The notes under the pieces are model-generated. The model ran no database searches, had not been told where the DNA came from, and saw nothing but the letters and a program-made list of their open reading frames with translations. From Phaeosaccion multiseriatum (lineage: Eukaryota > Protista > Ochrophyta, other classes), in NCBI GenBank assembly GCA_965112735.1, contig OZ218965.1:744001-808000 (forward strand): DNA of 64,000 nt, in the 5' to 3' direction. The translations under genes were made by a program, and so were the position numbers. Numbering within the stretch: position 1 is the first letter of the stretch; the number at the start of each line of letters is the position of its first letter. Shown here one piece after another: positions 26,279 to 47,063 of this stretch.

Positions 26279-27025
26279 ATGTCTACTGCCCAGGTGGTGC
26301 TTGGCGTGGTGGCTATCGTACTGGGCGTATGTTCCTTCGCATACACATTTCACAAGGATGACACTGCTACGCGGCGCGACAAGATGACGGCGTTCAAGGA
26401 GCTGACGAAAGATTATCAGGACGTTCAGACGATGATTACTAAGTTGCATTCGATCAAGGCATCTTTGGAACTTCAATTTACAGGCACCCCGTGGTATATC
26501 CAGGTCTACAGGCTTCAAGAATCAGACGAGGATCGGAAATTCGTCGAGGAGGCACGCCAGAAAATGGCCGCGTTTTGGGACGTGGTATCGACGTTCAGCA
26601 AGCACCAGCTTTACCCTCATGGGCTTGTGTTCCCGCCTTTAGAAGACGAGAGAGGGTGGTTTGCTCGCCAATGCAAAAAGATACGGCAGTTTACATGCCA
26701 ATGGAGGGAGGGGGAGGGAGAGGGGGAAGAAGGGGAAGAACGAGAGGCAACAACTTGGTTGACTAGAGCCAACAGCTACCGCGCACTTGTTGAGCCCTTG
26801 GATTGCGCCAACTATCATAGACTTAATTTCAACAAGGAAGGGGATGAGAAACCACGCCATAAACGCTACGACTACCAGAGTGGAAATGAGTCCCTAGATA
26901 ACCGGCCGTTGCGGTATGCCGACTTTGAACGAAGATGGGTGCTGTGCAAACCAGCGGATGAGGAGAGGGTGGCCAAACAACTCAGCGATGTTGTAGCGGA
27001 GTGCTTGGACGCTCAGGACGGATGA
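26279..27025 (+). CDS. Intronless orphan protein with N-terminal membrane anchor (possibly DUF4760-like)
   Basis: 248-aa high-complexity ORF: MSTAQVVLGVVAIVLGVCSFAYTF (TM helix), then a helical domain ARQKMAAFWDVVSTF...LVEPLDCANY...RYADFERRW. The family call is tentative. Confidence 0.7.
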   Translation: MSTAQVVLGVVAIVLGVCSFAYTFHKDDTATRRDKMTAFKELTKDYQDVQTMITKLHSIKASLELQFTGTPWYIQVYRLQESDEDRKFVEEARQKMAAFWDVVSTFSKHQLYPHGLVFPPLEDERGWFARQCKKIRQFTCQWREGEGEGEEGEEREATTWLTRANSYRALVEPLDCANYHRLNFNKEGDEKPRHKRYDYQSGNESLDNRPLRYADFERRWVLCKPADEERVAKQLSDVVAECLDAQDG

Positions 27026-30000
27026 GATGATTGAAAGGTGCTGATCTTGTTGGTGCTGCTCACCACGATGAGCTCGGAGCTCGGAGATGACGATGGAGCT
27101 CAAAGAGAGGGGGAGAGCGGCAAAGGCCGGCACAGGGGGAGAATGGTTAGGAGCGAAAGGGAGAGGAAGAGAGAGAGAGACTGATGGAGAGAGGCGAGAC
27201 CCGTCTACAGACTGGTGGAGAGAGGCGAGACGGCGCCGGTCTAGAGAGGCCCTGGGGGCTTGAGGACCGGCGTTGGCGTTAGCGTTAGCGTCAGCGCGTA
27301 CCTGGGGCTGAGAGAGTTGGAGTGCGTCGGGCTGGGGGGATCTATGGATATTGAGGGCGAGGCTGGGGCGGAGGAGAGACTGGCATATACATACATATCT
27401 ATATATATATATATATGAGCAGCTGGAGGCATATGGTGGTTGTGCTCATATGGTACTGCGGCGATACCCCTGATCTGCTGAGGGACTTTAGCAACGAGAT
27501 TGGCGTCTGCTGGCTGGGTATGTGGGGACGCTTGGCACGGTTGCACCTATCAGCGAGAGGCCGGCAGATGGCGACTGGGATGGAAGCGCTCCGGTGGTCC
27601 AAGGACGGAGCTGGAGCTGGGCCCGCGTGCGACAGCTGGTGCTACGCGAAGGTTGGTATGGCGACGCGTATCTGATGGGGTGGGTGTTGGTGATTAGTAG
27701 AGGCGTTCTGTTGGGTTGGTCTCTGTGCTACGTAGCTACCAGCGCCATGCTTATGGGGTAGTAGTTAGCGATGGGTGAGGCTGAGTGGTAGCTAAGGGGG
27801 CCTGTGGATGGGTGTAGCTCCCGTGACTAGGGTGACCTCACCTTGGGGGAAGGGCTGTGTATTTTCCTTTGTTGTGTTGTTTGTTCGGGTTGGATGCGTT
27901 TTTTTTTCGTGTCCAAGGCAGAGAGAGGCAGGTCTACCACAGTGGTGTTTGTCAGTGTGTGCTTCTGCAAGCTGCTGTGCGTCACCGCCCCCCTTTGGTG
28001 CGTTATCACACAGACGTCCTTACGCTTACGCTGCGTTGAAAGGAAAGATAGACTTGCCTTTGTCTGCGTCTCCGCTCCTCTCCTCTGTCCTAGCTGCTCC
28101 ATTTCCCCTACCTATCCTCCACCAACTTCTGTGAACGAATCAGCGACTCTGTGACACTCCTCCGTAAAGCTGCCTGTTTTTCTGATGCCCTCCCTCCCTC
28201 CCTCCCCTTCCCCCCCATTCTAGAGAAACACACGCTCTCTGGTACGAAGCTTATCAACACGGCCGTGAGCAGCCTTCATGGCAGTCATCTTCGGAGTCAA
28301 GCTCGCCTACGATGGCGTGGTGAGTGGGGGAGGGAACGATGGAGGGCGGGCGGGCGGGAGGGAGGGGAGGGAGGGAGGGAGGGAGGGAGGGAGGGAGAAA
28401 GAGAGCGCGTCCGTGAGTGAGTGAGTAAGCCAAACTGTACTGTAGGCCGAACTGTCATACAACACCGAAGGGGCATCAACAGAGGCCAAAACCCTTCCGT
28501 CTTGTCCGTGCCATTCAGTCCGGTCGTCCGAGCGCTCTCTCTAGACTGTCGCACACCCGATGTCATGTTTTGACTCCCATCCTCCCTCCCCTTGCGCCTC
28601 CAACTTGCTCCACTTCGAATCCGCTCAGCGTAAAGCGGTACCGCGACTCGGGGGCGGCTCTCATGCTGACTATGGCAATGAACGCCTTTATCCCTCACGC
28701 TGCCGTCAGCTTTAAGGCTACTCAGACTTAGAGGGTGAGTCGAGGAGGGAGGGGGGGAGGGAGGGTGTGGGCGGGTGCGTGGGTGCGTGCGTGCGTGCGT
28801 GCGTGAGTGCCCCGCTCCACGCAGACCTGAGTGCAGAGGGAAAAGAACACGCCGGTTTCACTAAGAAGCAGCGGCAGTAGGGCGGAGGGGGAGGGGGGGG
28901 CTTTCGTCGGCAAACCGAAGGGTGCAGAGAAGAGACCTTCCGCCCTGCTGCCTCCCGTCCCACCGAGAGGCTGTGACGATCTCCCTCTGCACCTGCCCGG
29001 CTCCCCCCTCGTCGGGCCCTGAGTTGTGTCCCCCGTCGGCAGCGGTCAGAAGGATGAGAGGTCGGGCCCGAATCATATCATGGATGACGACGACGTAGCA
29101 TGATTTCCGACGTGAAACCTAGACACTGACGGGCCTCTCTCTGCCCTCCTTTGTTTGGAGGTGCACTGCGTACTTTGTCGATTGTCTCGCAGAGAATGGT
29201 TCGTTCTACGTAACGGCATGTCGACCCACCTCTTCCCCCACCCCCACCCCTCTCCACCCTCCACCTCCCCCGCCCCCCACATACCCTTTTCTACTGACCT
29301 GACCCAATCCTGACCTGGCCTGCACTGGACTGGCCCGTCCCTCCCCTCGCCTCCGCATCTCACCCCTCTTGTCGCTCACTGCCACCGCCACTGCCACCGC
29401 CACTGCCACCTCCCCCGACACCACACTGGCAGGCTTGGCACGGTGTTCACTGTGTGCCTCATGGACAGCCCGGGCGGGCATGGCCATGTTGGTGCTGTCG
29501 TTTGCTGCCATCGCCTTGTTGGATGGAGAGAAGTTCATGTGCTTTCACATGTACCGCATCCTGCCGCAGTGCCCGAGTGATGTGATCCTGGGCCTGCTCA
29601 ACAGCACGCCCTTGTGCACATTTTTGAAGCTTCTGAAGAGGAGCACCCAGGTCAGTCTGAAACACGAACGTCACGTGACGCATACACACACCTTCCTGGT
29701 GCTGACCGGTGGGCTACATGCTCTACCCGTGTTGTGGACACCCGTCACCGCGGTGCATGATGGCTGCTCTTTTGCTTCTTCATCTCTTCATCTCTGTGTT
29801 TCCTGCATCCCTCTATCAATAGTTCTCTTTTCTCTCTCTCTCTCTTCGTGGCTGTGTTCGTGTATCTCCATCTGTTCCCCTCTCTCTGTCCCCCGCCCTT
29901 CCCGTCTCCTCTCACTTACCCCCTCTCTTCCCCCTCCTCCCTCCTCCTCCCTCCTCCTCCTCCTGCTGCTGCTGATGTTGCGTTCCCTTGGCGGGCACTT

Positions 30001-30725
30001 CTCTCTGGCCTCTTCCCCCCTCCCCCTCTGCTCGCTGCCCTCTCCTCCCTCTCTCTCTTTGACTCTGTGCTCGTGCGCTCTCTCTCTCTCCCTCTCTGTC
30101 CCGCTTCTTGCAGGAGGCCGCAAGCCTTCGAGGCGGCGCTCTTCACTGGGCCGCGGACAGCCACGCCACAATGTCAGCTCACAAGTACTGCCAAGTAAGT
30201 CAGAGAAGGAAGAGGAAACAGACCTCCTTCCTGTTTTGCTTTCGCTGCAGGAGGGACTCACTCACTCACTGGCTGTGGGGCGGAGAGGGTCACACACCTC
30301 CTGTCCGTGCGCTCTTGCCTTACCCTGTGCCCGCTAGTCGCGAATCAATGTGTGACGTTCTTTGTGGATCGATGACCTCACCTCCCCGCTGTGCCTACCC
30401 GACACCAGGCAAGCCCCCCAGCAGCACCGAGGGGGAAGGTGGTACGTGCACGAGCGAGATCATCCCGAGCTTGGCCGGCAGTGCAGATGCCCATACACTT
30501 CTCCCCAAAGAGAGCGCTGGGCTGGCTGGGCGGAGTGAGGGTGAGTCAGGGTGGTACTGCGAGGATGCGGCGCTTTACTCCTTTTGAAAGAGGGCTATAA
30601 TACTCTCTCCTCGTCCTGGTGCTGCTCGTGTCCTTGTGGACCATGTATGCTCCGTTGTTCGAAGCCCCCGCCCATGAGCACAGAATCAGGCTGTAAGTAG
30701 AAAGCAGAGGATGATGAGGCGAAGC

Positions 30726-30830
30726 ATGGCTGCTGTAGAGTTGGCGTTGGGCGTGGCGGGGGCCGTGTTGGGCGGATCTTCTCTCGTGCGCACTATCGTC
30801 AAGGAAAGATCAAAGACAAGATGGGTGGAG
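30726..30830 (+). pseudogene. N-terminal remnant of a paralog of the 26279 membrane-anchored ORF (second remnant at ~42108-42200)
   Basis: MAAVELALGVAGAVLGGSSLVRTIVKE aligns ungapped with MSTAQVVLGVVAIVLGVCSFAYTFHKD; similarity is lost afterwards. Confidence 0.55.
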
Positions 30831-31067
30831 CTCGAGGAGAACACTTTGAATTTGATTTATTTTTATTTGCCCGACCTATGTAACAAAACAATTGTTTGAG
30901 TTGCTTTTTTTGCTCCCCAAAGGGGCAAAATCCTGCTCGCTCAGCGCTCTAATCATATGCTTCGATGTACACGGCTACAGACCGATTTTTCCTCGGACCA
31001 ACTGCACCTCTACTGCCCACATGACCACAAGTCAGTCTCAAGGTACAACTGAAGCAGAGCAGCAGCA

Positions 31068-31290
31068 GCCCTCACCACTAGAGTAGGGCCCAAGGACAGA
31101 CGTCTCCCGCATTGGTATTGACCTACGAGGCGATGTCTTCTCCCACGGACAGCTCTACGTCGCCCTCTCCCGAGCCAAAGGCCACGACCGCTTCGTCGTC
31201 CATGTCCAGCTCTCGCGACTCTTGGACGGCGTCGCCCACACTGCCAATATTACATACCCTGCCTTTATTAACGCTGCTTTATCCCTATAG
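31068..31290 (+). mobile_element. Helitron RepHel (Pif1-type helicase) C-terminal remnant, copy 1
   Basis: With small frameshifts it reads ALTT..[29 protein letters not shown]...HTANITYPAFI*. This matches the Helitron helicase end [35 protein letters not shown]...TxNIVY. Confidence 0.85.
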
Positions 31291-31371
31291 AACTCTCCCT
31301 GTCTCGTCTGCCCCTCCTCCTTCATCCCCTCCACATCCTGCACTCGCCATTTGTGACTCCCTCCTAATTTG

Positions 31372-34300
31372 CTAATTTGCTTCTCCTTCCTCGCCTGCCC
31401 CGTTCACCTTTTTCTCCTCCACTCCATCTTCTTCTGCCAGTTCTTGCGAAGCCAACCCCTCTTCCCTCCTCCTCTTCCTTCCCCCTGCCGAGGGCGCAGC
31501 CCGAAGACCCGTCTTGTTCATCCTAATGATACCGTCAATGCGCTCCCTTACCTTCTCAACGTAATCAGCCTCATACTGCTGTTCCTCATACTCTTGGCCG
31601 GTTACGCTCGAAAGCTCACGCAGAAGCTCCTCCCAGGTCTTCGGCCAGTCTTTCTCCGGTTCATCTTCCTTTCTCCACGCGTCCCACTGCTCGCCGATCT
31701 CGGGATGAGCCTCGAGCAGCCGCTCCGTTCCGTTGTAGCAGTCCCCCGGGGTGAGTTTGTAGAAGAGGGGCACCACCAGGAAGTCCTCTTCATTCTTGAG
31801 CCTCTCCATGAAAATCTCTGTCTCCTTGAGGCACCACTCGCGGCAGAGGAACTGTGGGCTCAGCACCACCAATCCGATCTTGGCCTTCTTCGCCGCATTG
31901 ACCATGTAGTTGGGAGCTTGACCACCCAGTTGAAGATCCTCCCTATCCAGAAAGGCCGTTACACCGCTGTCCCACAGCGCCGCCCACAGGTTGTAGACAA
32001 GCCCCCACTTGTCCGGCCCGGCGTGGCTCAAAAAGACATCGAACTGCGCCGCGTCGTGCTGGGCATACTCGTTGCCGAGCAGCCCCAGCTCGGCCGCCAG
32101 GGGGTGCCGTCTACTTGCAATCGACTCCATGGATTCTTCAGGGGAAATGAAGGCTAAGCCCTTGAATCTCTCGTCCAGCATAGCTCCGATCCAATTGTGA
32201 ACCATCCCCCCAACCTCCCAACAGTTACTCTGGACGTCGCTCTTCACGAACAGCAGAAGATCTGCCCCTTCTACCATGACGAGAACGTCCACTTGGTTCA
32301 CCCGAAGCGCAGCGGCGTACTTGGCGCACCCGCGGATCTGGACGACCTTCTTGTGTGGCTCTTCGCTTCGCTTTCCCAGAAACCAGGCAAGCAAAAAGGG
32401 TAGCGTCCCAGACGGGAAATGAGCATTGCGCGCCTCGAAATGGCCTCGAGTACACTCCTCCGATTTCGCCTTGAGGAAAGTCATTAAGACCTCCCGCACC
32501 TCAGCATTGCCATCCCCCCCCAATCGGAGCCTCGTTGGGGCCACGTACACGTCCTTACGGCCCTCCTCGTCTTTGAGTCCGGTCACGGGCAGGATCACAC
32601 CGTGCTGAGCCAGTGTCTCCAGCATACCTTTGAAGAACCCCTTTTCCTCTTGGAGCCGCTGAAACGCCTTCTTCACTGGCTCACCTTCTTCGCAGGACGC
32701 AGCACCGACTTCGTGTCCCACGGACACCCAGAGCTGCCACAGGCAATATATGTACTCGGAAGAAGTCGTTGCTTTGGTCAGGAAGTTGCTCTCCTGCACG
32801 TGAAGAGCACGGAACGATGGAAGCTGTTCGTTGGTCCCAGTGTTGCTATACGCCATATCCTCAAGCATGTCGGCCCACAGTGTGTGTTTCACCGTGGCTT
32901 CCGTGAGTTTGTGGGAAGCAAGTGGCTTGACCAATGCCATCAGCCAAAGTGGGTTGACGTGCACATACCCCTCCAGCCACAGCACCGCTCCCACCGCCTC
33001 TTGCAATTTCAAGGCCAAGTCAAAAGTCTTCTTGGGGTCCTCTATGTCGAGTTCCTGAGCTCCCTCGGACTCCCTCCACTTGGCCTGCAGCTGCTTATCA
33101 CCAATGCACAGCTCGTCTTTGCACGCTTCTAGCGTGAGGCGTACAGTCACCCACGGAAGGGGTACCACCTTTCCCACATCCGGGAACAGCGTGCTGGGTG
33201 TGTCCTCTGTGCAGCCCTCCAACGCGAGCCTCTCAATGTACTCGCGAACATCCTGCACATCTTTGTCGGCTGTGAGATCCACAGCCAAGTAGTCCCCTTG
33301 CACCTTTAAAGGCTCTATGGTTCCAGCGCGTTTCTTGTGTGTCTTCAGAACTCTGTCCACTAGTTTCTGGACGTCACCCACTACTTTGTCAACGTCGCCC
33401 CCCTCCTGCTCCACGATATCAGCGTGAGATCCCAAAACAACCACAACACTGCCAGGCGCGTATACTTGCAGAGCATCGAGCCACTCAACGACCAAATCGC
33501 GTTCCGCTGTCTGCGATCCCCCGCTGAAGGCCTCGAGGTTAATGGTGAGTACGTACAAAGCCCCCTCAGTCAGACAGAGCTGGTGGTAGGCGTAGTAGTC
33601 TCGCTGACCCGCAAAGTCCCAAATCACCAATTTTAAAGGCCTACTCTCGTCCTTGCCCAGCGTTACTGCGTGCGTCTCGACGCCAATCGTCGACTCATCC
33701 TGTCCATCACGAAGATCCCTCTGTCCCCCCGTTAGCGATAGCGCCAAGGTCGTCTTCCCTGCCTTGTGCCGCCCCACCAGCACGACCTTCAGTTTCCACG
33801 ACCGCTCCTTGCCTTGACTCAGGTCGATCCAATACCGCTTCACTGCCTCAAGGCCGCGAGCCACCACATCGGTGCTGGGCGCTGTCCATGGATTGCCATG
33901 GAGGTATAGTGATTTTGAGAGCTTCTCCAGGCCTCTTGCTGCGTCAAGCGATATCTCTGAAAACGGGCAAGCAAGAAGGGAGACGATTTTCACTCTTGTC
34001 AGTATTTCAAGTCAAAGGGGCGAGGAAATTTCTTTAGTCACGCTGAGCTCCAGGCCAAAGGATGTGAACGGGGCTCGAGTACCACTCACCAGTGAGTTTA
34101 TTGTTGTTGAGGTCCAGTTCCTCAAGGTTCTGAAGACCTCCAAGCTCGGGTGGAATGCCCCCTGCGGATGGGAGGAGAGTTCTGTTGGTCACACTCATAT
34201 CAAGTGAAAGGGACGCGAACGGGTACGCGTACCACTTACCAGTGAGCTCGTTGCTTTGGAGGCGCAGATAAGTGAGCAGACCGAGACGTCCAAGCTCGGG

Positions 34301-37300
34301 TGGAATGCTCCCTGCGGATGGGACGAACGTTGTTTGGTCACAATCGTATCAAGTCAAAGGGACGCGAACGGGTGTGCTAACCACTCACCAGTGAGCTTAT
34401 TGTTGTTGAGGCAAAGTCCCTCAAGGTTCTCAAGATCTCCAAGCCAGGGTGGAATGCTCCCTGCGGATGGGAGGAAAGTTCTTTGGTCATACTTCCATCA
34501 AGTGAAAGGGACGCAAACGGTTCGCGTACCACTACCTTCCAGATTGTTCTCGTGGAGCCGCAGTTCTTGAAGGTTTGAAAGCTCTCTAAGTCGCGGAGGA
34601 ATACCCCCTGAGATGGGAAGAAAGCTCTTAGATCATACAAAAATCAAGTGAAAGGGACGCGAACGGGTACGCGTACCACGTACCGCTGAGCTGGTTGGTC
34701 CACAGTTTGAGCACCGTCAGGTTCTGCAGGCGCCCAAGCTCTGGTGGAATGATCCCTGCGGATGGGAGGAGAGTTCTTTGGTCACACTGATATCAAATCA
34801 AAGGGACACGAACGGTTTCACGTACCACTCACCAGTGAGCTTGTTGTTTTTGAGGTCCAGTCTCTCAAGGTTCTTAAGACCTCCAAGCTCTCTAGGAATG
34901 CTCCCTGCGGATGGGTGGAAAGTTCTTTGGTCACACTGATATCAAATCAAAGGGACACGAACGGTTTCACGTACCACTCACCAGTGAGCTTGTTGTTTTT
35001 GAGGTCCAGTCTCTCAAGGTTCTTAAGACCTCCAAGCTCTCTAGGAATGCTCCCTGCGGATGGGTGGAAAGTTCTTTGGTCACACTGATATCAAATCAAA
35101 GGGACACGAACGGTTTCACGTACCACTCACCAGTGAGCTTGTTGTTGTCGAGGTAAAGTCTCTCAAGGTTCCGAAGACCTCCAAGCTCTGGTGGAATCCT
35201 CCCTGCGGGTGGGAGGAGAGTTCTTTGGTCACACTGTGTAAGAAGGCATCCTTTTGCTAGGCTGGCAGCTATCCACTGAATACTCACGGGGGTAGCTGCC
35301 AGCCAAGCAAAAGGATGCCTTCTTACAACTGATATCAAGTCAAGGGGACGCGAACGCGTACGCGTACCACTCACCGGTGAGCTTGTTGTTGTCGAGGGCC
35401 AGTTTCTCAAGGTTCTGCAGACGCCCAAGCTCGGGTGGAATACTCCCTGCGGATGGAGGGTTCTTTGGTCACACTCATATCAAGTCAAGCGGACGCGAGA
35501 AAAGTTGGGCCACACTAATATCAAATCAAAGGGACACGAACGGTTTCACGTACCACTCACCAGTGAGCTTGTTGTCGTTGAGGTCCAGTCTCTCAAGGTT
35601 CTTAAGACCTCCAAGCTCTCTAGGAATGCTCCCTGTGGATGGGAGGAAAGTTCTTTGGTCATACTCATACCAAGTGAAAGGGACGCGAACAGGACCACTT
35701 ACCGCTGAGCTTACAACCATAACCACGGCCGAATCGCAAGGAGGACAATCCAACTGCACGTCCCACCATCTTTCTCACTGCGGAGCGGAGGAAAGTGCTT
35801 CGGTCACACTAATATTGAGTAAAGTGGACGCGAACGCGTACGCGTACCACTTACCCCTGAGCTCCTCGGACACCAGCTTGAGCACCGTCAGGTTCTCAAG
35901 ACTTCCAAGTTCGGGTGGAATGCTCCCTGCGGATGGGAGGAGAGTTCTGTGGTGATTAGGTGGCCCCAGGGAGTTAAACCATTATAAGCCCGTCCCTGGG
36001 GCCACATAATCACCACAGTTCTCTGGTCACACTAGTATCAAGTCAAGGGGACGCGAAAGGGTTCGCGTACCACCTACCTTTTAGATTGTTCCCGTTGACC
36101 CGAAGTTCTCGAAGGTTCCAAAGCTGTCCAAGTTGCGGCGGAATAGTCCCTGAGATGGGGGGAAAGCTCTTCAGCCCAACCAATATCAAGTCAAGGGGAC
36201 GCGAACGGGTACGCGTACCACTTACTTGTACCCTTGACCTGGGAGGGGTATGGTGGACCTCCGACGATGCGTACGGAAAAGGAGAGGCTCAGATACTCAA
36301 GCGTCTCCAGACTCCCAAGCTCCCTTGGAATGCTCCCTTCGGATAGAGGCGTAATGTTTGCAGTTTTGGGAGTTTCTCCAGGTCTCTTGCTACGTCAAGC
36401 GATATCTCTGGAAACGGGCAAGCAAGAAGGGAGACGATTTTGGCTCTTGTCAGTATTTCAAGTCAAAGGGACGCGAACGTTACAATGGGGCGAGGAAAGT
36501 TCTTTGGTCACGCTGAGCTCCAGGTCAAAGGATGTGAGCGGGTTCGCGTACCACGTACCAGTGAACTCGTTGAAGGCGAGGCTCAAATGCTCAAGCTTCT
36601 CCAGACTTCCAAGCTCCCTTGGAATGCTTCCTGCGGAGTGGAGGGAAGTTCTTTGTCTTACGACTATCAAACAAAGGGACGCGAACGGGTACGCGTACAC
36701 CTACCTTCTAGAGAGTTCCAATCCAGTTTAAGTTCTCGAAGCTCTGCTAGCTTCCCCAACTCCTTGGGAATGTTCCCTGTGGAGCAAGGAGAGTTCTCTG
36801 GTCACACTCATACCAAGTCAAAGGGACGCGAACGGGTGTGCGTACCACTTACCAGTGAGCCTGTTTTTATGGAGGCTCAAAAACTTCAGCTTCTCCAGAC
36901 TTCCAAGCTCGGGTGGAATGCTCCCTGCGGATGGGAGGAAAGTTCTTCAGCCATACTAATATCAAGTCAAAGGGACGCGAACGGGTATAGTTGAGATAAG
37001 TTTTTGAAGGTTCGAAAGCTGTCCAAGTTGCGGCGGAATAATCCCTGGGGTGGGGGGAAAGTTCTTCAGCCATACAAATATCAAGTCAAAGGGACGCGAA
37101 CGGGTGTGCGTACCACTTACCTTCTAGATTGTTGTTGATGAGCGTAAGTTCTCGAAGGTTTGACAGCTGTCCAAGTTGCGGCGGAATGTTCCCTGCGGAT
37201 GGAGGGAAAGTTCTTCAGCCCTACTAATATCAAGTCAAGAGGACGCGAAGAACGGGTTGCTCGACTACCACGTCATGCCGCTTCATCACATTTTTTTTGC

Positions 37301-37619
37301 CCCGCTTTGCTTCGTCCTTCCCGAATATTCTAGACCCATCACATTGTTGGATGAACAGAGAGAGAGAACTTTTCGAAAATTCTGGAAGGGCTCTTCCGAA
37401 CCAAGGCGGAACAACCATAATCACGTCTCTCTCACCTCTGAGTTTCTTCAAGACCAGGTGGAGCTTCACAACATGGCCATTCTCTACGGTCACTCCGACC
37501 CAGGACTCCAAAGATGCGTCAGTCCATCCTTCTTCCTTCTTACGCAAAGCGCGTCCCCTCATGGCGTCAAAGACGGCCGTGAGTATGCTACGCTGCTGAT
37601 CTTGGGGGACGCTAGACAT
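31372..37619 (-). CDS. LRR-ROC-COR-TIR (ROCO family) immune-receptor-like protein, copy 1
   Basis: N-cap exon 37619-37436. Sixteen intact 72-nt LRR exons start at 37192, 36924, 36776, 36630, 36149, 35926, 35632, 35446, 35202, 35053, 34904, 34755, 34607, 34460, 34311 and 34161. Atypical in-frame exons lie at 36336-36226 and 35777-35703. Terminal exon 33956-31372 has ROC GRHKAGKTT/STIG/WDFAGQRDYY/GSHAD, a COR-like region and TIR FDVFLSHAGPDK...SPQFLCREWCLKE. Confidence 0.93.
35237..35327. mobile_element. 91-bp miniature inverted-repeat element, TGT...ACA ends, 4-bp TSD ACTG
   Basis: Left arm TGTAAGAAGGCATCCTTTTGCTAGGCTGGCAGCTA matches the reverse complement of the right arm, TGTAAGAAGGCATCCTTTTGCTTGGCTGGCAGCTA. 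ACTG is duplicated at 35233-35236 and 35328-35331. Sister introns show the empty site. Confidence 0.92.
35948..36017. mobile_element. 70-bp miniature inverted-repeat element, TGT...ACA ends, 4-bp TSD GTTC
   Basis: TGTGGTGATTAGGTGGCCCCAGGGA and TCCCTGGGGCCACATAATCACCACA form 25-bp arms with 1 mismatch. GTTC is duplicated at 35944-35947 and 36018-36021. Sister introns show the empty site. Confidence 0.9.
36337..36558 (-). pseudogene. Stub of a ROC-COR-TIR terminal exon and its specific upstream intron embedded in the LRR array
   Basis: Copy of the terminal intron (GAGCTCAGCGTGACCAAAG...CTTCTTGCTTGCCCGTTTCCAG) followed by EISLDVARDLEKLPKLQTLRLY. Compare EISLDAARGLQKLSKLQTLQVHL in gene 2. It is then fused to an LRR cassette. 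Confidence 0.85.
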
Positions 37620-37705
37620 CGTAACCTTCGTAACACGCAAACACTGGTAATAGCTCGCCCTGTCCTCCTACTAGGCGTAGTGCACACAAAGTGAACGCTT
37701 TGAAT

Positions 37706-38060
37706 CCATAAAGTTCACAAATGGATCACGGCACTGAAATTTATCCAACGCGTTGTTGCCTTGAAGAAGAGACGCTACCAGAAGACCCTCACGTACAAGG
37801 CCTATGTGTGAATCGCAAGGAATGATGGAGCGTTTTTCTGACTCAAGCAACGCGCCGTGGGAAAGAGAACACAAGAAAATCCCAACGAAGAACGTCTTCG
37901 CGATGCCACTGCTGTGGTGGATGGTCAAAGGAGAAACGCGAAAGATGCAAGCAATATACCGGTGTGGATCGAAAGGATAGCAGCGGATCGTATGATGACG
38001 ACAACTGTGTTTCTTTCTGCACAACTTTCTACACTCTCTGGCATCAGGCATCAGGCACAC
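37706..38060 (+). mobile_element. Degenerate DDE integrase remnant, Ginger2/KRBA2-like (tentative)
   Basis: Across frameshifts and stops it reads P*SSQMDHGTE(F)SNALL...RTRPMCESQGMMERF (cf. QSDNGxEF...PQSQGxVER), then VVDGQRRNAKDASNIPVWI and LSTLSGI. Confidence 0.45.
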
Positions 38061-38214
38061 TTCATCGCACATGTCCGTCGTGTGAGCAAGTACACATGCG
38101 AGGGAGTATAATTTGTTCCAGGTGCCCTGCCATTGCCCAGCTTTGCAGACGGCAGCGGACATTCTGCCTCAGCTGGCAGACATCCACAACCGATGGCGAC
38201 CGGGAGAGGTACCG

Positions 38215-38433
38215 GAGTTTCGGCGTGGTGAAGGGGATGGACATGGGGTGTGGGTGCACAGTTACCGCCAGCATACTGGACGCAAGAGCAAGCTTGATCC
38301 TGTGCGATGGTTTGGTCCGTGTCGTGTTGTTCAGCGTTTGAGGGAAGGGGGAGCCTCTTACTATTGCAAGCGACTGGCTTCGGATCCTCCAAAGGTGGGC
38401 TGGGTGCATGGGAACCGTCTTCGGCTGTACACG
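38215..38433 (+). mobile_element. Integrase C-terminal GPY/F module remnant (Ty3/gypsy or Ginger type)
   Basis: EFRRGEGDGHGVWVHSYRQHTGRKSKLDPVRWFGPCRVVQRLREGGASYYCKRLASDPPKVGWVHGNRLRLY fits FxxGDxVWV...KLxPRWxGPY/FxV...Y.L...VHxxRLKxY. Confidence 0.75.
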
Positions 38434-39564
38434 GGTGACGAGGAGGAGATCCCGGCTGCTCGCTCCTCCTGTTCGTCCACGGCCTCCTGTTCCGAGGCTT
38501 CCAGACGATCGTAGAGGACTTGCGCAGCGACGTGAGGTGCGAGAGGCGGGAAGAAGAGGTGCTGTGAGGCATTACGCTGCGGCTCAGGGGCGAGAGCGAC
38601 GGGTGGTTCGGAGGGGGCGCGTTGGTGATCCACAGCAGGAGCGGGAGGAGGACCCAGCGGTTGTTGGTCAAGGAGTGCCTCTTCCTCACACGCTGCCCTA
38701 CGCTTCACAGTTGACGAGGGAGCGTCTGTATCAACGAGGAGTGGTGGTGTTAGTGCGGGGCTCGGCGTGGGGGGAAGATTTGGGGCGGCCTCACGACAGC
38801 TCCCTCAGCCCCCTTAGCAGCAGCAACCACCGCCCAGTGGTGGTGGTGGAGGGGGTCTTGGACCGAACGGCTCGCTCACCCCTACGTCAGTAACCTTCTC
38901 CTCTGCTTCCAACTTCTCTGTACTGACAAGGGAGCCGGAGGAGGTGGTGATGGAGCCTGTGGTGGTGGGGGTGGAGGGAGAAGAAGGTTGGCGTGTTGCA
39001 TAGCTACCTTCGGAGGTGGCCCTTGGGTGAGGCGGCGGGGGGCGCGTGTTCGGCTCCGCTCTGCTGCTGCTGCTGCAGAAGGGGTGGGTGAGGCTCACCT
39101 CCGGCCGGCCCTGCGGGTGGGGGTGGAGACAGGGGAGCGCCTGCCCAGGGCCAGCAGAGCAGCAGCACAGCGGCAGCAGCAGCAGGATGATCGTAGCAGC
39201 GATCCTCTACAGCAAAATGGCCGCGCTCGGTGGAGAGAGAGGGATGAGGTGCGCCTCTTGCGAAGGGGGGGGGGGATGCTCTCGGTGCCCACCCACCCAC
39301 CCACCCCGGTGAGAGGGAGCTCTGGCGTGGGGTTGAGAAGGGCTCAGACGAGGGGCGAGGTCAGATAGAAACATGTGCGGCCCGCGCCCGCTTTCTCTCT
39401 TTCCTCTTGCGGAACGGACTGTGGCGAGAGGCAATAGGGCGAACACCACCAGCGCTGAGCAGATGGTAGCAGATGTCGCCGTGTGAGCCCGCACCGCCTT
39501 GACAATGGGGGGGGGACTTGACCTGAACGCAGCAGCAGCGGAGGGCATCGCAGAAGTGAAGGCA

Positions 39565-39609
<45 letters not shown>

Positions 39610-42568
39610 CGGTAGAACTAGGACGTCCCGAAGCGCCACGCACGCAGGAGGCCTAGGAGGCCGCAAGGGGCCTCCTATCAACACGGCCGTCAGCAGCCTT
39701 CATCGCAGCCATCTTCGGAGTCAAGCTCGCCTACGACGACGTGGTGAGTGGGGGAGGGAACGATGGAGGGCGGGCGGGCGGGAGGGAGGGTGGGAGGGAG
39801 GGAGGGAGAAAGAGAGCGCGTCCGTGAGTGGGTGAGTAAGCCAAACTGTACTGTAGGCGAAACTGTCATGCAACACCGAAGGGGCATCAACAGAGACCAA
39901 AACCCTTCCGTCTTGTCCGTGCTATTCAGTCCGATCGTCCGAGCGCTCTCTCTAGACTGTCGCACACCCGATGTCATGTTTTGAGTCCCTTCCTCCCTCC
40001 CCTTCCCCTCCAACTTGCTGCACTTCGAATCCGCTCAGCGTAAGCGGTACCGCGAGTCGGGGGCGGCTCTCATGCTGACTATGGCAATGAACGCCTTTAT
40101 CCCTCACGCTGCCGTCAGCTTTAAGGCTACTCAAAACTTAGAGGGTGAGTCGAGGAGGGAGGGAGGGAGGGAGGGAGGGTGTGGGCGGGTGCGTGCGTGC
40201 GTGCGTGCGTGAGTGCCCCGCTCCACGCAGATCTGAGTGCAGAAGGGGAAAAACACGCCGGTTGCACTATGAAGCGGCGGCAGTAGGGCGGAGGGGTAGG
40301 GGGGGGCTTTCATCGGCAAACCGAAGGGTGCAGAGAAGAAACCTTCCGCCCTGCTGCCTCCCGTCCCACCGAGAGGCTGTGACGATCTCCCTCTGCACCT
40401 GCCCGGCTCCCCCCTCGCCGGGCCCTGAGTTGTGTCCCCCGTCGGCAGCGGTCAGAAGGATGAGAGGGCGGGCCCGAATCAAGTCATGGATGGCGACGAC
40501 GTAGCATAATTTCCGACGTGAAACTAGAAACTGACGGGCCTCTCTCTGCCCTCCTTTGTTTGGAGGTGCACTGCGTGCTTTGTCGATTGTCTCGCAGAGA
40601 ATGGTTCGCTCTACGTAACGGCATGTCGACCCACCTCTTCCCCCACCCCCCACCCCCTCTCCACCCTCCACCTCCCCCACCCCCCCCCATACCCTTTTCT
40701 ACTGACCTGACCCAATCCTGACCTGGCCTGCACTGGACTGGTCCGTCCGTCCCTCCCCTCGCCTCCGCATCTCACCCCTCTTGTCGCTCACTGCCACCGC
40801 CACTGCCACCTCCCCCGACACCACACTGGCAGGCTCGGCACGGTGTTCACTGTGTGCCTCATGTGCAGCCCGTGCATGCCCGTGTTGGTGCTGCCGTTTG
40901 CTGCCATCGCCTTCTTGGATGGAGAGAAGTTCGTGTGCCTTCACATGTACCGCATCCTGCCGCAGTGCCCGAGTGATGTGATCCTGGGCCTGCTCAACAG
41001 CATGCCCTCGTGTACATTTTCGAAGCTTGTGAGGAGGAGCACCCAGGTCAGTCTGAAACACGGAACGTCACGTGACGCATACACACACCCTCCTGGTGCT
41101 GGCTGCTGGGCTACATGCTCTACATGTGTTGTGGACACCCGTCACCGCGGTGCATGAGGGCTGCTCTTTTGCTTCTTCATCTCTTCATCTCTGTGTTTCC
41201 TGCATCCCTCTATCAATAGTTCTCTTTTCTCTCACTCTGCGTGGCTGTGTTTGTATCTCCATCTGTTCCCCTCTCTCTGTCCCCCGCCCTTCCCGTCTCC
41301 TCTCACTTACCCCCTCTCTCTCCTCCTCTCCCCTCCTCCTCCCTCCTCCTGCTGCTGCTGCTGCTGCTGCTGATGTTGCGTTCCCTTGGCTGGCACTTCT
41401 CTCTGGCCTCTTCCCCCCTCCCCCTCTGCTCGCTGCCCTCTCCTCCCTCTCTCTCTTTGACTCTGTGCTCGTGCGCGTTCTCTCTCTCTCTCTCTCTCTG
41501 TCCCGCTTCTTGCAGGAGGCCGCAAGCCATCGAGGCGGCGCTCTTCACTGGGCCGCGGACAGCCACGCCACAATGTCAGCTCGCAAGTACGTCAGAGAAG
41601 GAAGAGGAAACAGACCCTTTTTCTGTTTGCTTTCGCTGCAGGAGGGACTCACTCACTCACTGGCTGTGGCGTGCAGAGGGTCGCACTCCTCCTGTCCGTG
41701 CGCTCTTGCCTTGCCCTGTGCCCGCTAGTCGTGAATCAGTGTGACGTCTTTGTGGATCGATGACCTCACCTCCCCGCTGTGCCTACCCGACACCAGGCAA
41801 GCCCCCCAGCAGCACCGAGGGGGAAGGTGGTACGTGCACGAGCGAGATCATCCCGAGCTTGGCCGGCAGTGCAGATGCCCATACACCTCTCCCCAAAGAG
41901 AGCGCTGGGCTGGCTGGGCGGAGTGAGGGTGTATCAGGGTGGTACTGGGAGGATGCGGCGCTTGACTCCTTTTGAAAGAGGGCTATAATACTTTCTCCTC
42001 GTCCTGGTGCTGCTCGTGTCCTTGTGGACCATGTATGCTCCGTTGTTCGAAGCCCCCGCTCATGAGCACAGAATCAGGCTGTAAGTAGAAAGCAGAGGAA
42101 GAGGAGGTTGCAGAGTTGGCGTTGGGCGTGGCGGGGGCCGTGTTGAGCGGATCTTCTCTCTTGCGCACTCTCGTCAAGGACAAGACAGGACAAGACAAGA
42201 TGGGTGGAGCTCGAGGAGAAAACTTTGAATTTGATTTATTTTTATTTGCCCAACCTATGTACAATGTAACAAAACAATTGTTTGAGTTACCTATATGCCT
42301 CCAAAGGGGCAAAATGCTGCTCGCTCAGCGCTCTAACCATATGCTTCTATGTAGGCGGTTATTCATCTCGGACGGCTCTCCACCGCCTTTTCCTATAGGA
42401 CACCGGCTCCCTCGTACCTCCTCCAGCATGCTGGGCGCCCCCTTCGTGAGGGGAATTCCGCTTGAAGATGACTTTTCACCTGCTGCACCTCCCTCCGGGC
42501 TTGCATGTACTGCCCACATGGCTGACCACAAGTCAGTCTCAAGGCACAGCTGAAGCAGAGCAGCAGCA

Positions 42569-42792
42569 GCCCTCACCACTAGAGTAAGGCCCAAGGACAG
42601 ACGCTCTCCCGCATTGGTATTGACCTATGAGGCGATGTCTTCTCCCACGGAGAGCTCTACGTCGCCCTCTCCCGAGCCAAAGGCCACGACCACGTCGTCG
42701 TCCATGTCCAGCCCTCGCGCCTCTTGGACGGCGTCGCCCACACTGCCAATATTACATACCCTGCCTTTATTAACGCTGCTTTATCCTCATAG
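42569..42792 (+). mobile_element. Helitron RepHel C-terminal remnant, copy 2
   Basis: [31 protein letters not shown]...HTANITYPAFI; internal stop. Confidence 0.85.
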
Positions 42793-43051
42793 AACTCTCC
42801 CTGCCTCCTCTGCCCTCCCTCCTTCATCCCCTCCACATCCTGCACTCGCCATTTGTGACTCCCTCCTAATATGCTTCTCCTTCCTCGCCTGCCCTGTTAC
42901 GATATAAGGCATCCCACTATGCCTTCAGTAATATCCGAACGTGTCCCTTTCATCTTTTTCTCCTCCACTCCATCTTCTTCTCCCAGTTCTTGCGAAGCCC
43001 ATTCCTCTTCCCTCCTCCTCCTCCTCCTCCTCCTTCCCCCTTGTTCCTTGT

Positions 43052-46000
43052 TCATCCTATGATATCTTGAATGTGCTCCCTTACCTTCTCAACGTAATCA
43101 GCCTCATACTGCTGTTCCTCGTACTCCTTGCCGGTTTGATTCGAAAGCTCAGGCAGAAGCTTCTGCCAGGCCTCCGGCCAGCCTTTCTCCGGTTCATCTT
43201 TCTCCCTCCACTCGTCCCACTGCTTGTCTATCTCGGGATGAGCCTTGAGCAGCCGCTCCGTTCCGTCGTAGCAGTCGCCAGGGGTGAGTTTGTAGAAGAG
43301 GGGCACCACCAGGAAGTCCTCCTCTTTCTTCTCAAGCCTCTCCATGAAAATCTCTGTCTCCTTGAGGCACCACTCGCGGCAGAGGAACTGTGGGCTGAGC
43401 ACCACCAATCCGATCTTGGCCTTCTTCGCCGCACTGACCATGTAGTCGGGAGCTTGACGACCGAGTTGAAGATCCTCCCTATCCAGAAAGGCCGTTACAC
43501 CGCTGTCCCACAGCGCCACCCACAGGTTGTAGACAAGCCCCCACTTGTCCGGCCCGGCGTGGCTCAAAAAGACATCGAACTGCGCCGCGTCGTCCTTGGC
43601 ATACTCGTCGCCGAGCAGCCTCAGCTCGGCCGCCAGGGGTTGCCGTCCGCTTGCAATCGACTCCATGGATTCTTCAGGGGACATGAAGGCTAAGCCCTTG
43701 AACCTCTCGCCCAGCATCTCTCTGATCCAATTGCGAACCATCCCCCCAACCTCCCTACAGTTACTCTGGACGTCGCTCGTCACGTACAGCAGAAGATCTC
43801 CCCCTTCTACCATGATCAGAACGTCCAAGTGGTTCACCCGAAGCGCAGCGGCGTACTTGGCGCACGCGCGGATCTGGACGACCTTCTTGTGTGGCTCTTC
43901 GCTTCGCTTTCCCAGAAACCAGGCAAGCAAAAAGGGCAGCGTCCCAGACGGGAAATGAGCATTGCACGCCTTGAAATGGCCTCGAGTACACTCCTCCGAC
44001 TTCGCCTTGAGGAAAGTCGTAACGACCTTCCGTACATCAGTATTGCCACCCCCCCCCAATCGGAGCCTCGTTGGGGCCACGTACACGTCCTTACGGCCCT
44101 CCTCGTCTTTGAGTCCGGTCACGGGCAGGATCACACCGTGCTGAGCCAGTGTCTCGAGCATGCCTTTGAAGAACGTCGTGTCCTCTTCGAGCCGCTGAAA
44201 AGCCTTCTTCACTGGCACACCTTCTTCGCAGGACGCAGCACCGACTTGGTGTCCCACGGACACCCAGAGCTGCCACAGGCAAAAGAGATAGTCGGAAGAA
44301 GTCGTTGCTTTGTCCAGGAAGTTTCTCTCCTCCTCGTGAAGAATATCGAACGACGGGAGCTCCATAAGTTCGTTGGTCCCAGTGTTGCTATGCGCCATAT
44401 CCCCAAGCATGCTGCGCCACAGTGCGTGTTTCACCGTGGCTTCCGTGAGTTTGTGGGAAGCAAGTGGCTTGACCAATGCCATCAGCCAAAGTGGGTTGAC
44501 GTGCACATACCCCTCCAGCCACAGCACCGCTCCCACCGCCTCTTGCAATTTCAAGGCCACCTCAAAAGTCTTCTTGGGGTCCTCTATGTCGAGTTGCTCA
44601 GCTCCCTCGGACTTGCTCCACTTCTCCTGCAGCTTGTTATCACCAATGCACAGCTCGTCTTGGCACGCTTCTAGCGTGAGGCGTACCGTCACCCACGGGA
44701 GGGGCACCATCTTTCCCACATCCGGGAACAGCGTGCTGGGTGTCTCCTTGGTGCTGCCCTCCAACGCGAGCCACTCAATGTACTCGCGAACCTCCTGCAC
44801 ATCATTCTTGTCTGTGAGATCGACAGCCCAGTACTTCTCTTGCACCTTCAAAGGCTCTATGGTTCCAGCGCGTTTCCTATGTGTCTTCAGAACTCTGTCC
44901 ACTAGTTTCTTGACGTCACGCACTACTTTGTCAACGCCCCCCCGCCCCGGCTCCACGGTATCAACGTGAGATCCCAAAACAACCACAACACTGCCAGGCG
45001 CGTATGCTTGCAGAGCATCGAGCCACTCAATGACCAAATCGCGTTCCGCTGCCTGTGATCCCCCGCTGAAGGCCTCGAGGTTAATGGTGAGTACGTACAA
45101 CGCCCGCGCAGTCAGACAGAGCTGGTGGTAGGCGTAGTAGTCTCGCTGACCCGCAAAGTCCCAAATCACCAATTCCAAAGGCCTACTCTCGTCCTCCCCC
45201 AGCCTTACTGCGTGCGTCTCGATGCCAACCGTCGACTCATCCTGTCCAACAGCAGGATCCCTTTGTCTCCCCATTAGAGATAGCGCCAAGGTCGTCTTCC
45301 CTGCCTTGTGCCGCCCCACCAACACGACCTTGAGTTTCCACGACCGCTCCTCGCCTTGACTCAGGTCGATCCAATACCGCTCCACTGCCTCAAAGCCGAC
45401 AGCCACCACATCGGCGCTGGGTGCTGTCCAAGGATTGCCGTGGAGGTGTACTTGTAGTGTTTGCAATTTTGAGAGCTTCTGCAGGCCTCTTGCTGCGTCA
45501 AGCGATATCTCTGAAAACGGGCAAGCAAGAAGGGAGACGATTTTCACTCTTGTCAGTATTTCAAGTCAAAGGGGCGAGGAAAGTTCTTTAGTCACGCTGA
45601 GCTCCAGGCCAAAGGATGTGAACGGGGCTCGCGTACCACTCACCAGTGAGTTTATTGTTGATGAGGTCCAGTTCCTCAAGGTTCTGAAGACCTCCAAGCT
45701 CGTGTGGAATGCTCCCTGCGGATGGGTGGGAAGTTCTTGGTCACACTAGCATCAAGTGAAAGGGACGCGAACGGGTATGCGTACCACTCACCGGTGAGCT
45801 TGTTGTCGCCGAGGTGAAGAGAAGTCAGCTGGCTGAGACCTCCCAACTCCTTGGGAAGGTCCCCTGCGGATGGAAGGAGAGCTCTTTGGTCATACTAATA
45901 TCAAGTCAAAGGGACGCGAACGGGTTCGCGTACCACTCACCAGTGAGGTAATTGTTGTTGAGGAACAGTGTCTCAAGGTTCCGAAGACCTCCAAGCTCTG

Positions 46001-47063
46001 GTGGAATCTCCCCTGCGGATGGGAGGAGAGTTCTTTGGTCACACTCATATCAAGTCAAGGGGACGCGAACGGGTTCGCGCACCACCTACCTTCTAGATTG
46101 TTCCCGTGGAGCCAAAGTTCTCGAAGGTTCGGAAGCTGTCCAAGTTGCGGCGGAATGCTCCCTGAGATGTGGGGAAAGTTCTTCAGCCATACTAATATCA
46201 AGTCAAAGAGACGCGAACGGGTGTGCGTACCACTTACCGGAGAGCTCGGTGTGGAAGAGGTACAAAACCTCAAGCTTCTCCAGACTTCCAAGTTCGGCTG
46301 GAATGCTCCCTGCGGAGCGGAGGAAAGTTCTTTGATCATACTATTTTCAAGTCAAAGGGACGCGAACCACTTACCAGTGAGCTTGTTTGAACCGAGAATT
46401 AAGTGCTTAAGCTTCTCCAGACTTCCAAGCTCGGGCGGAATGCTTCCTGCGGAGCGGAGGAAAGTTCTTGGGTCAAGTGAAAGGGACGCGAACGGGTGTG
46501 CGTACCACTTACCAGTGAGCTTGTCGTCGTAGAGGTGCAGCTTTTGAAGGTTCTGCAGATCTCCAAGTTCGGGCGGAATGCTCCCTGCGGAGCGGAGGAA
46601 AGTTCTTTGGTCATACTGAGATCAAGTGAAAAGTCGAAGGTTTTGAAGCTGTTGCGGCGGAATGATCCCTGAGATGTGTGGGGAAAGTTTTTCAGCATAC
46701 TACAATGTAATATCAAGTGAAAGGGACGCGAACGGGTCGCTCGACTACCACGTCATGCCGCTTCATCACATTTTTTTTGCCCCGCTTTGCTTCGTCCTTC
46801 CCGAATATTCTAGACCCATCACATCGTTACTTTCTTCTTCCGTCTCTCTCACCTCTGAGGTTGTTCCAGCCCAGGTCGAGCTTCACAACATGGCCATTCT
46901 CTACGGTCACTCCGACCCAGTTCTCCAAAGATGCGTCAGTGTTCCATCCTTTCTTGTGATTCCAAGCGGGTCCGCTCGTGGCGTGAAAGAAGGCTGTGAG
47001 AGCTCTGCACTCCTCATGGTCAATATATGTTGTCTCCTCGGGGACGCTGTGCGACGAACCCAT
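43052..47063 (-). CDS. LRR-ROC-COR-TIR (ROCO family) immune-receptor-like protein, copy 2
   Basis: N-cap exon 47063-46853 (MGSSHS...ALTAFFHATSGPAWNHKKGWNTDASLENWVGVTVENGHVVKLDLGWNNLRG). Seven intact 72-nt LRR exons start at 46584, 46446, 46309, 46161, 46012, 45863 and 45715. Terminal exon 45510-43052 has ROC, COR and TIR motifs as in copy 1. Confidence 0.94.
45644..46740 (-). repeat. Array of LRR exon + conserved intron cassettes (gene 2)
   Basis: Same intron consensus as in gene 1; one broken cassette at ~46668-46630. Confidence 0.95.

Follow-up and report, generated by a model that had tools for sequence, protein, structure and literature searches.

Tandem genes for predicted LRR-Roc-COR-TIR proteins in the alga Phaeosaccion multiseriatum carry arrays of 72-nt leucine-rich repeat exons separated by homogenised introns

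Two tandem genes with arrays of 72-nt LRR exons

We analysed a 64-kb stretch of the Phaeosaccion multiseriatum genome (GenBank assembly GCA_965112735.1, contig OZ218965.1, positions 744,001 to 808,000; this whole stretch is the window, and its own numbering is used throughout). It holds two minus-strand genes, A and B, predicted to encode leucine-rich repeat (LRR) proteins of the ROCO type with a C-terminal TIR domain. Both genes follow one plan: a leader exon, an array of 72-nucleotide (nt) LRR exons (the cassettes) and a single large last exon. Scanning for AG, 72 nt and GT with an open frame in phase 1 found 23 intact units, 16 in gene A (37192..34090) and seven in gene B (46584..45644), in agreement with the phase-1/phase-1 LRR exons described in an earlier account made from the letters alone (the sequence-only reading). 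Tandem Repeats Finder gives a period of 149 in the arrays (72 + 77). Each cassette encodes one plant-type LRR, G.IP.ELG.L..L..L.L..N.L. (also written GxIPxxLGxLxxLxxLxLxxNxL). The leader exons (184 nt in A, 211 nt in B) are both 1 modulo 3 and, since all boundaries are in phase 1, any subset of cassettes, even splicing of the leader directly to the last exon, joins in frame. The predicted proteins have ~1300 (A) and ~1060 (B) residues. The parts of the two genes, all on the minus strand, are as follows.

31372-37619, minus strand: gene A, ATG at 37619 and stop at 31372.
37436..37619, minus strand: gene A leader exon, 61 codons + 1 nt, with the LRR N-cap W..GVTVENGHVVKL, ending CTCAGAG/GTGAGA.
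37193..37435, minus strand: gene A first intron, its 5' part unique, followed by an array-intron core copy (near 37250, a looser match with indels) and 3' part.
34090..37192, minus strand: gene A array, 16 intact 72-nt phase-1 exons with the LRR motif.
37192-37121, 36924-36853, 36776-36705, 36630-36559, 36149-36078, 35926-35855, 35632-35561 and 35446-35375, minus strand: gene A cassettes 1-8.
35202-35131, 35053-34982, 34904-34833, 34755-34684, 34607-34536, 34460-34389, 34311-34240 and 34161-34090, minus strand: gene A cassettes 9-16.
35706..35777, minus strand: exon-like 72-nt unit with AG/GT intact and an open phase-1 frame, without the LRR motif (RKMVGRAVGLSSLRFGRGYGCKL), its 3' end still cassette-like.
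33957..34089, minus strand: gene A last intron, 133 nt, with a diverged array-intron 5' part, a partial second core and a unique 3' part.
31372..33956, minus strand: gene A last exon, 2585 nt, encoding a final LRR-like cap, Roc GTPase, COR-like region and TIR.
43052-47063, minus strand: gene B, ATG at 47063 and stop at 43052.
46853..47063, minus strand: gene B leader exon, 70 codons + 1 nt, with the N-cap W..GVTVENGHVVKL, starting MGSSHS.
46585..46852, minus strand: gene B first intron, with an exact core copy (46712-46735) and a truncated LRR pseudo-cassette (46633-46668).
45644..46584, minus strand: gene B array, cassettes at 46584-46513, 46446-46375, 46309-46238, 46161-46090, 46012-45941, 45863-45792 and 45715-45644.
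45511..45643, minus strand: gene B last intron, 133 nt, its first 60 nt matching the gene A counterpart at 59/60.
43052..45510, minus strand: gene B last exon, 2459 nt, encoding Roc, COR-like region and TIR.

The start of the gene B leader, MGSSHS, is a possible N-myristoylation signal; gene A starts with MSSVPQ, without such a signal.

Domains of the predicted proteins

Both last exons match Pfam Roc (9.7e-16 for gene A, 2e-16 for gene B) and Pfam TIR (5.2e-17 and 2.2e-16, respectively) above the curated cut-offs, with the P-loop and switch motifs of Roc (GRHKAGKT, DFAGQ) present in the translation and TIR_2 matched as well. Pfam COR gave no match in the last exons, even at E<=10, and COR is likewise invisible to Pfam in brown-algal ROCO proteins (PMC11378527). 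An AlphaFold2 model of the gene B last-exon protein, built with 14 homologues (predicted local distance difference test score, pLDDT, 74.7; predicted template-modelling score 0.74), aligned in Foldseek over ~590-740 columns to LRRK1/LRRK2 and to the RocCOR of Chlorobium tepidum Roco (3dpu_A), with E from 1e-17 to 1e-13 and a template-modelling (TM) score of 0.61 on target for 3dpu_A. A COR domain after Roc is hence predicted from the modelled fold rather than from sequence profiles.

The C-terminal domain of the model resembles plant TIR domains (RPV1, RUN1, L6) at a TM score of ~0.8, and the best alignments of the TIR sequence are to plant TIR receptors of the nucleotide-binding LRR class (TIR-NLRs) and bacterial TIR NADases. 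WCLKE corresponds to WCLEE of Roq1 in the alignment, so that the catalytic Glu is retained; from RPS4 and L6, we take the aligned Glu to be the catalytic residue of plant TIRs. By fold and by its WxxxE/CLxE glutamate, the TIR of both genes appears to be of NADase type, which upholds the proposed coupling to a TIR effector. With Roc and TIR assigned by Pfam and COR by fold, the products are LRR-Roc-COR-TIR proteins. They would be candidates for intracellular receptors that sense through the LRRs, switch through the Roc-COR GTPase and have the TIR (NADase-type) as output; we infer an immune role for them.

Array introns are more alike than silent sites of the cassettes

The simple array introns (65-78 nt, n=15) can be aligned end to end, and two more, of 151 and 172 nt, each return to exactly 77 nt once a hairpin insertion and one copy of its target duplication are subtracted. 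Mean pairwise identity is 0.83 (0.82 excluding splice-signal columns) and reaches 0.92 in a 20-column core (TTCGCGTCCCTTTGACTTGA), in which CpGs are kept; the length of ~77 nt in the sequence-only reading is thus confirmed, but "near-invariant" suits the core only. Identity between cassette exons is 0.62-0.64 overall, 0.50-0.53 at codon position 3 and 0.54-0.57 at four-fold sites, against a chance expectation of 0.26. The excess of intron over four-fold identity is 0.29 (95% confidence interval 0.14-0.44, bootstrap over units), supporting homogenisation of the array introns beyond neutral expectation. Similarity of introns correlates only weakly with that of exons (r=0.28).

Within the window, a 24-nt form of the core, CCGTTCGCGTCCCTTTSACTTGAT, occurs in 23 copies at <=3 mismatches (chance expectation 0), every one of them on the minus strand and inside the two arrays, first introns included. 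The first introns hold the 3' two-thirds of the unit and the last introns its diverged 5' part plus a partial second core. That core copies bracket the arrays, as had been noted, is therefore correct, but their reading as a leader and a terminal repeat is unnecessary, because tandem duplication of the exon-plus-intron unit leaves core copies at the array edges anyway. The last introns are 0.80-0.82 identical to the consensus (0.80 in gene A) and interior ones ~0.90, a gradient expected under unequal exchange.

Exon similarity tracks that of the upstream 40 nt (rho 0.27-0.39, p 0.004-0.02) and not that of the downstream 40 nt (rho ~0). Exon variants show no more linkage to the downstream intron core than the null (r2 0.05), compared to 0.10-0.12 within exons and 0.08-0.10 between exons and the adjacent 20 nt. 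Both signals are soft but fit exchanges that resolve in the core of the intron or in its 5' half. A scan of Joint Genome Institute metagenomes with the intron core returned two chance matches in unrelated sequence.

Genes A and B differ in cassette number, and their matching cassettes are largely colinear

Genes A and B lie within a tandem segmental duplication with a period of ~11.4 kb (28252-37583 versus 39676-47000), which includes a flank:

28252..31404: duplicated flank 3' of gene A, non-coding, 92% identical to its partner 39676-42898.

The last exons share 92% of their nucleotides and 84% of their amino acids (dN 0.080, dS 0.089); like the flanks, they are thus more diverged than the "near-identical" of the sequence-only reading. 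Between the two genes, TIR has a dN/dS of 0.5, compared with ~1 for Roc and the COR-like region. The two frames of 800+ codons are nevertheless open, an outcome seen in 0.1% of neutral simulations at the A-B divergence, which argues that both genes are maintained. The C-terminus of gene A has an extra 49 residues relative to gene B.

The counts of 16 and seven cassettes stand as first given, but not the claim that they come in different order with only the Roc-proximal LRR in correspondence. The best matches of five of the seven gene B cassettes are colinear with gene A (A2/B2 81%, A4/B3 76%, A5/B4 89%, A9/B5 88%, A16/B7 96%), in a chain that is weakly significant (p=0.03, or p=0.14 with B7 fixed), so that strict colinearity of the arrays is suggestive only. 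The comparison shows gain and loss of cassettes; reordering is not demonstrated, and colinearity with gain and loss fits equally well. Differences between candidate orthologous cassettes are mostly non-synonymous (dN/dS 1.1-1.9) and the least conserved columns form the central stretch of the exon, which we read as the xxLxLxx part of the LRR motif. This pattern fits diversifying selection on the LRR binding face, as published for ROCO LRRs.

Duplications, scars and insertions within the arrays

The arrays bear several marks of past rearrangement:

34772..35146, minus strand: exact period-149 run across cassettes A9-A11, a 226-nt exact match at offset 149.
36986..37044, minus strand: truncated LRR pseudo-cassette in gene A, with the exon 3' end and the intron 5' end deleted.
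46633-46668, minus strand: truncated LRR pseudo-cassette in the first intron of gene B.
35474-35508: partial second core in A intron 7, where a cassette was lost.
36226..36558, minus strand: relic in the gene A array, made up of a last-intron copy (36408-36558), the first 56 nt of a Roc exon (36352-36407) and a degenerate LRR (36226-36336).
35949..36016: hairpin insertion in A intron 5, 68 nt, of the type of a miniature inverted-repeat transposable element (MITE), with AGAACT direct repeats and RNA fold z -8.3, unique in the window.
35237..35327: hairpin (MITE-like) insertion in A intron 8, 91 nt, with CAGT direct repeats and RNA fold z -13.9, unique in the window.

In the A9-A11 run the exons of A10 and A11, and introns 9 and 10, are the same letter for letter: this is a very recent tandem duplication of whole exon-plus-intron units. 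B introns 1 and 2 have short deletions. The relic at 36226-36558 is 76-78% identical to the real last-intron and Roc-start regions, its degenerate LRR has extra sequence and it contains an in-frame stop; on this account we read the gene A array as a fusion or deletion product of two former tandem gene copies. The two hairpin insertions are different perfect-hairpin elements and match microRNA-precursor models below threshold only.

Chrysoparadoxa genes share the plan and have a uniform array intron of their own

A search of a collection of 5.8 billion proteins returned no close homologue of the Roc-COR-TIR exon. In an exhaustive search of 1.84 billion representatives three proteins spanned the whole exon, all from Chrysoparadoxa australica (CAM9907097.1, CAM9660036.1 and CAM9880587.1, each an "unnamed protein product"; 38-41% identity by HMMER, 29-36% by BLASTP). 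They are the nearest relatives recovered, 35-36% identical across the full Roc-COR-TIR exon. Over this exon and the pentatricopeptide repeat (PPR) protein encoded elsewhere in the window, best matches are 30-41% identical (Chrysoparadoxa, brown algae, diatoms).

The three Chrysoparadoxa loci examined (L003, L004 and L006; GCA_964200425.2) resemble genes A and B in plan, with a leader bearing the same N-cap motif, 72-nt phase-1 LRR exons and one large last exon, and also in having uniform short introns. They differ in the intron itself, which is ~95 nt long, of a uniform sequence of its own and again more alike than four-fold sites, and in their more uniform LRR exons. Identity between the three loci is 0.89 for introns, 0.80 for LRR exons and 0.71 for four-fold sites, whereas their Roc-COR-TIR halves share 30-38% identity and are as distant from one another as from genes A and B. 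The arrays would therefore have undergone exchange or homogenisation among loci without the rest of the gene taking part, and this comparison of loci appears to be the strongest comparative support for array-specific exchange.

The introns of the two species look alike by eye (GTGAGTGG.ACGC..ACCC.T.CG..GTCC), but conservation between species was rejected on local alignment (p=0.88) and anchored comparison (p=0.06-0.15), and a covariance model of positions +7..+36 of the window intron matched no Chrysoparadoxa intron. The lack of significant shared sequence argues for homogenisation within each genome and not for an ancient conserved element. At L003, a 147-nt LRR exon (538-684) that encodes about two repeats and is still phase-symmetric suggests loss of one array intron.

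Comparison with known systems

In Ectocarpus ROCO genes, 72-nt "type I LRR exons" undergo exchange within and between genes under positive selection (Zambounis et al. 2012, PMC3341825); recent duplicates there are identical except for a recombined LRR domain with 13 versus 17 exons, and somatic recombination has been hypothesised (PMC3341825). This work was extended in 2024 to four brown algae and to alternative splicing of the LRR exons, which are labelled "phase 2" (PMC11378527); we take this label as a GFF (general feature format) convention, equal to phase 1 in the usual intron definition. Genes A and B are like brown-algal ROCO genes in having one LRR per 72-nt exon of symmetric phase (GxxPxxLxxxxxLxxLxLxxNxLx), the order LRR-Roc-COR, recent tandem duplicates that differ mainly in LRR number (13 versus 17 there, 16 versus seven here) and LRR residues under diversifying selection. 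Brown-algal loci also have inactivated or reverse-strand LRR exons within the array introns; here the decayed cassettes (36986-37044, 36226-36336, 46633-46668) are on the same strand and none is on the opposite strand. A difference lies in the uniform introns of ~77 nt, as exons at one Ectocarpus ROCO locus lie 416-557 nt apart, with intron ends 0.58-0.61 identical against a shuffle baseline of 0.54 and no TIR. Similarity to Ectocarpus and Scytosiphon proteins is confined to Roc (27-36% identity), and the TIR present here is absent there. Genes A and B accordingly seem to be neither orthologues of brown-algal ROCO genes nor of their LRR-ROC-COR-only architecture.

The novelty that had been suggested for this system must then be divided: the principle of LRR-exon shuffling in ROCO genes was already published, for Ectocarpus, in 2012 (PMC3341825), but neither the TIR fusion nor compact homogenised introns are mentioned in the brown-algal ROCO literature compared (including PMC3341825 and PMC11378527), and TIR is mentioned nowhere in the Phaeoexplorer preprint. 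Genes A and B add a TIR effector and a compact unit of 149 nt whose introns are homogenised, and the analysis adds a measured excess of intron over synonymous similarity. Fusions of Roc-COR with a C-terminal TIR exist elsewhere, in the Chondrus crispus TPR-ROCO-TIR protein, with tetratricopeptide repeats (TPR) in place of LRRs (cited in PMC11378527), and in metagenomic LRR-Roc-COR-TIR_2 proteins (P0004, P0005), all of them distant (E 1e-5 to 1e-4). With plant TIR-NLRs (Roq1, RPP1, RUN1), the predicted proteins have in common an LRR sensor, an NTPase switch and a TIR with the catalytic Glu. They depart from these in having a Roc-COR GTPase instead of the NB-ARC ATPase of the STAND (signal transduction ATPases with numerous domains) class, the TIR at the C-terminus (order reversed) and one exon per LRR.

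The resemblance to variable lymphocyte receptor (VLR) genes and integrons proposed in the sequence-only reading does not hold, as the defining features of both are absent. VLR genes of lampreys and hagfish consist of an incomplete germline gene with flanking donor cassettes that lack splice sites, assembled by copy-choice driven by cytidine deaminase in lymphocytes. Genes A and B share with them LRR modules as cassettes and diversity from module number and order, but are complete, with cassettes that are ordinary exons and no donors in the 64-kb window. In integrons a site-specific integrase acts on attI/attC sites flanking promoterless cassettes, whereas the cassettes here are AG/GT exons of eukaryotic split genes, and no integrase was found among the window open reading frames (ORFs) covered in a partial scan. 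Finally, Dscam isoforms arise through mutually exclusive exon choice by docking/selector RNA pairing. Tandem similar in-frame exons could here too yield isoforms, with many cassettes presumably included together; duplex energies of the intron consensus with the unique parts of the first and last introns are at shuffle level (fractions 0.17-0.71) and thus show no Dscam-type docking.

Other features in the window

On the plus strand, 4.3 kb from the TIR end of gene A, a 248-aa ORF (26279-27022, within ORF 26066-27025) has an N-terminal hydrophobic helix and an EDS1 EP-domain signature (SYRALVEPLDCANYHR). It matches Pfam EDS1_EP at 32.9 bits (cut-off 23.1; E 6.6e-8) and EDS1/PAD4 chains in the PDB at E=0.002. 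No homologue was found among 5.8 billion proteins, and a single-sequence AlphaFold2 model (pLDDT 43) was unusable. The EDS1 family, which senses the products of plant TIRs, is considered to have originated in seed plants.

Within the duplicated block, immediately 3' of each ROCO gene, there is a decayed reading frame (42571-42790, plus strand, with a copy within 31011-31404) that includes TANITYP and resembles C-terminal motifs of Pif1/Helitron-type superfamily 1B helicases (Pfam only E=0.11). Copying of the block may have involved a Helitron-like element. A third, partial copy of the flank (24572-25150, 84%) lies upstream of the EP-motif ORF, as does a perfect interstitial telomere-like repeat, (TTAGGG) x 9.8, at 25835-25893. 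The window also contains genes for the PPR protein (50048-51907, minus strand; best relatives ~30% identical, in diatoms and unnamed protists) and a RING-finger protein (56193-57761, minus strand), and an HhH-GPD fragment (1238-1987, minus strand).

Discussion

We consider it probable that these data reflect concerted evolution of the array in the germline, together with diversifying selection that acts on the exons. The LRR domain would be written as tandem 149-nt units, each a 72-nt phase-1 exon and an intron of ~77 nt, which germline unequal crossing-over, replication slippage and gene conversion between misaligned units would add, remove and homogenise. Diversifying selection on exposed LRR residues would hold the exons apart, while the introns, being free of it, would stay homogenised. 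As the longest stretches of identity, they would be where exchanges tend to resolve and, because every boundary is in phase 1, each such exchange would preserve the reading frame. We infer in this way both the exchange mechanism and its location in the intron. Of the frame-safe exchange site put forward in the sequence-only reading, homogenisation, frame safety and gain and loss of cassettes are retained; reordering is not, and the scars break within exons too.

Several points weigh against germline concerted evolution of this kind. The visible scars (36986-37044, 46633-46668 and 36226-36558) arose by illegitimate joining and have breakpoints not only in introns but also in exons. Even inside exons linkage is low (null r2 ~0.05), so that the breakpoint signal is a soft one. 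For 77-nt introns to remain alike beside diverged 72-nt exons, tracts must be very short, or else selection must purge those that span exons, and dN/dS is near 1 across Roc and COR. Moreover, the data are one assembly and two genes from P. multiseriatum, repeat arrays are prone to assembly error, and cassette exons and splicing are predictions from genomic sequence.

Alternatively, and as the main rival, the intron could be functional in splicing, its uniformity due to purifying selection: a hairpin in the first ~36 nt would engage the 5' splice site (+3..+8) and weaken or regulate the donor of each cassette, and skipping of cassettes, at random or on cue, would yield many in-frame isoforms from a single gene. 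Such a hairpin is found at the same place in both species despite their differing sequences (for example, at 45905-45940, minus strand, in the window and at 235-270 of L006), with z from -2.5 to -3.4 in several window copies and from -1.7 to -3.3 in Chrysoparadoxa copies. The 0.92 identity of the core, its retained CpGs, an intron length held at about 77 +/- 1 and the alternative splicing on record for brown-algal ROCO LRR exons (PMC11378527) point the same way. Nevertheless, we find this explanation unlikely. The hairpin shows no covariation or compensatory changes, two of its stem pairs are broken in 5 and 10 of the 15 distinct copies, its CGCA variants fold no better than shuffles (z -0.5) and the folds of whole array introns are of ordinary stability (z -0.15 to -1.6). 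No signal of sequence or structure is common to window and Chrysoparadoxa introns, complementarity of the intron consensus with the first or last intron (docking/selector) or with itself does not exceed that of shuffles, and no known Rfam family occurs in the arrays.

A broader idea, to which we assign a distinctly low probability, sees the uniform intron of every unit as a working part. As a hairpin that masks the splice site, or as an inverted repeat prone to recombination, it would allow a single individual to vary in the cassettes that it includes or in their number, with the EP-motif ORF as a possible partner. If true, an alga outside the brown algae would have a diversifying LRR receptor wired to a TIR enzyme, and the EP-motif ORF (26279-27022) as a downstream partner would parallel plant TIR-EDS1 signalling.

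Plain recent tandem duplication followed by neutral decay would make introns alike through the youth of the units, and the exact A9-A11 copies show that whole exon-plus-intron blocks do duplicate. Introns no more alike than synonymous sites had been named beforehand as the mark of such a process. In the very same units, however, identity is 0.83 for introns and 0.54 at four-fold sites, with intron and exon similarity only weakly correlated (r=0.28), and Chrysoparadoxa has the same intron excess across unlinked loci, all of which makes this account very improbable. It is just as hard to credit that the arrays are partly an assembly artefact, in which units were collapsed, expanded or mis-joined. 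Short reads are indeed hard to assemble across arrays of 149-nt period with exact copies, and the relic Roc fragment could be a mis-join, but most units have unique substitutions, the two transposon-like insertions differ, the scars are distinct, and both arrays and the independently assembled Chrysoparadoxa loci show the same design.

Least credible of all is programmed somatic rearrangement, in which cassettes would be gained, lost or copied within an individual's lifetime in the manner of VLR or V(D)J systems, the core being the recombination signal: the frame-safe design, the uniform core in each unit and the array-length difference between duplicates are permissive of it, the idea having been raised for Ectocarpus (PMC3341825), while, in contrast to the incomplete germline VLR gene, the assembly has both genes in full and in spliceable form, the 64-kb window has no donor cassettes outside the arrays or on the opposite strand and, in a partial scan of its ORFs, no recombinase or deaminase, and a duplication of dS ~0.09 accounts for the A/B differences. 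A single assembly bears no evidence on somatic events; since the arrays are short (1-3 kb) and can be spanned by single long reads, whether variation is germline only or also somatic is directly testable.

For brown algae and their relatives, the foremost candidate for a route to receptor diversification is the shuffling of LRR exons in ROCO genes, and earlier descriptions of it concerned long heterogeneous introns and proteins without a recognised effector domain. The TIR of genes A and B, with its catalytic residue predicted to be retained, would tie the cassette system to an output known in plant, animal and bacterial immunity, and the excess of intron similarity, together with the sharing of arrays among Chrysoparadoxa loci, provides a quantitative and testable signature of array-specific exchange.

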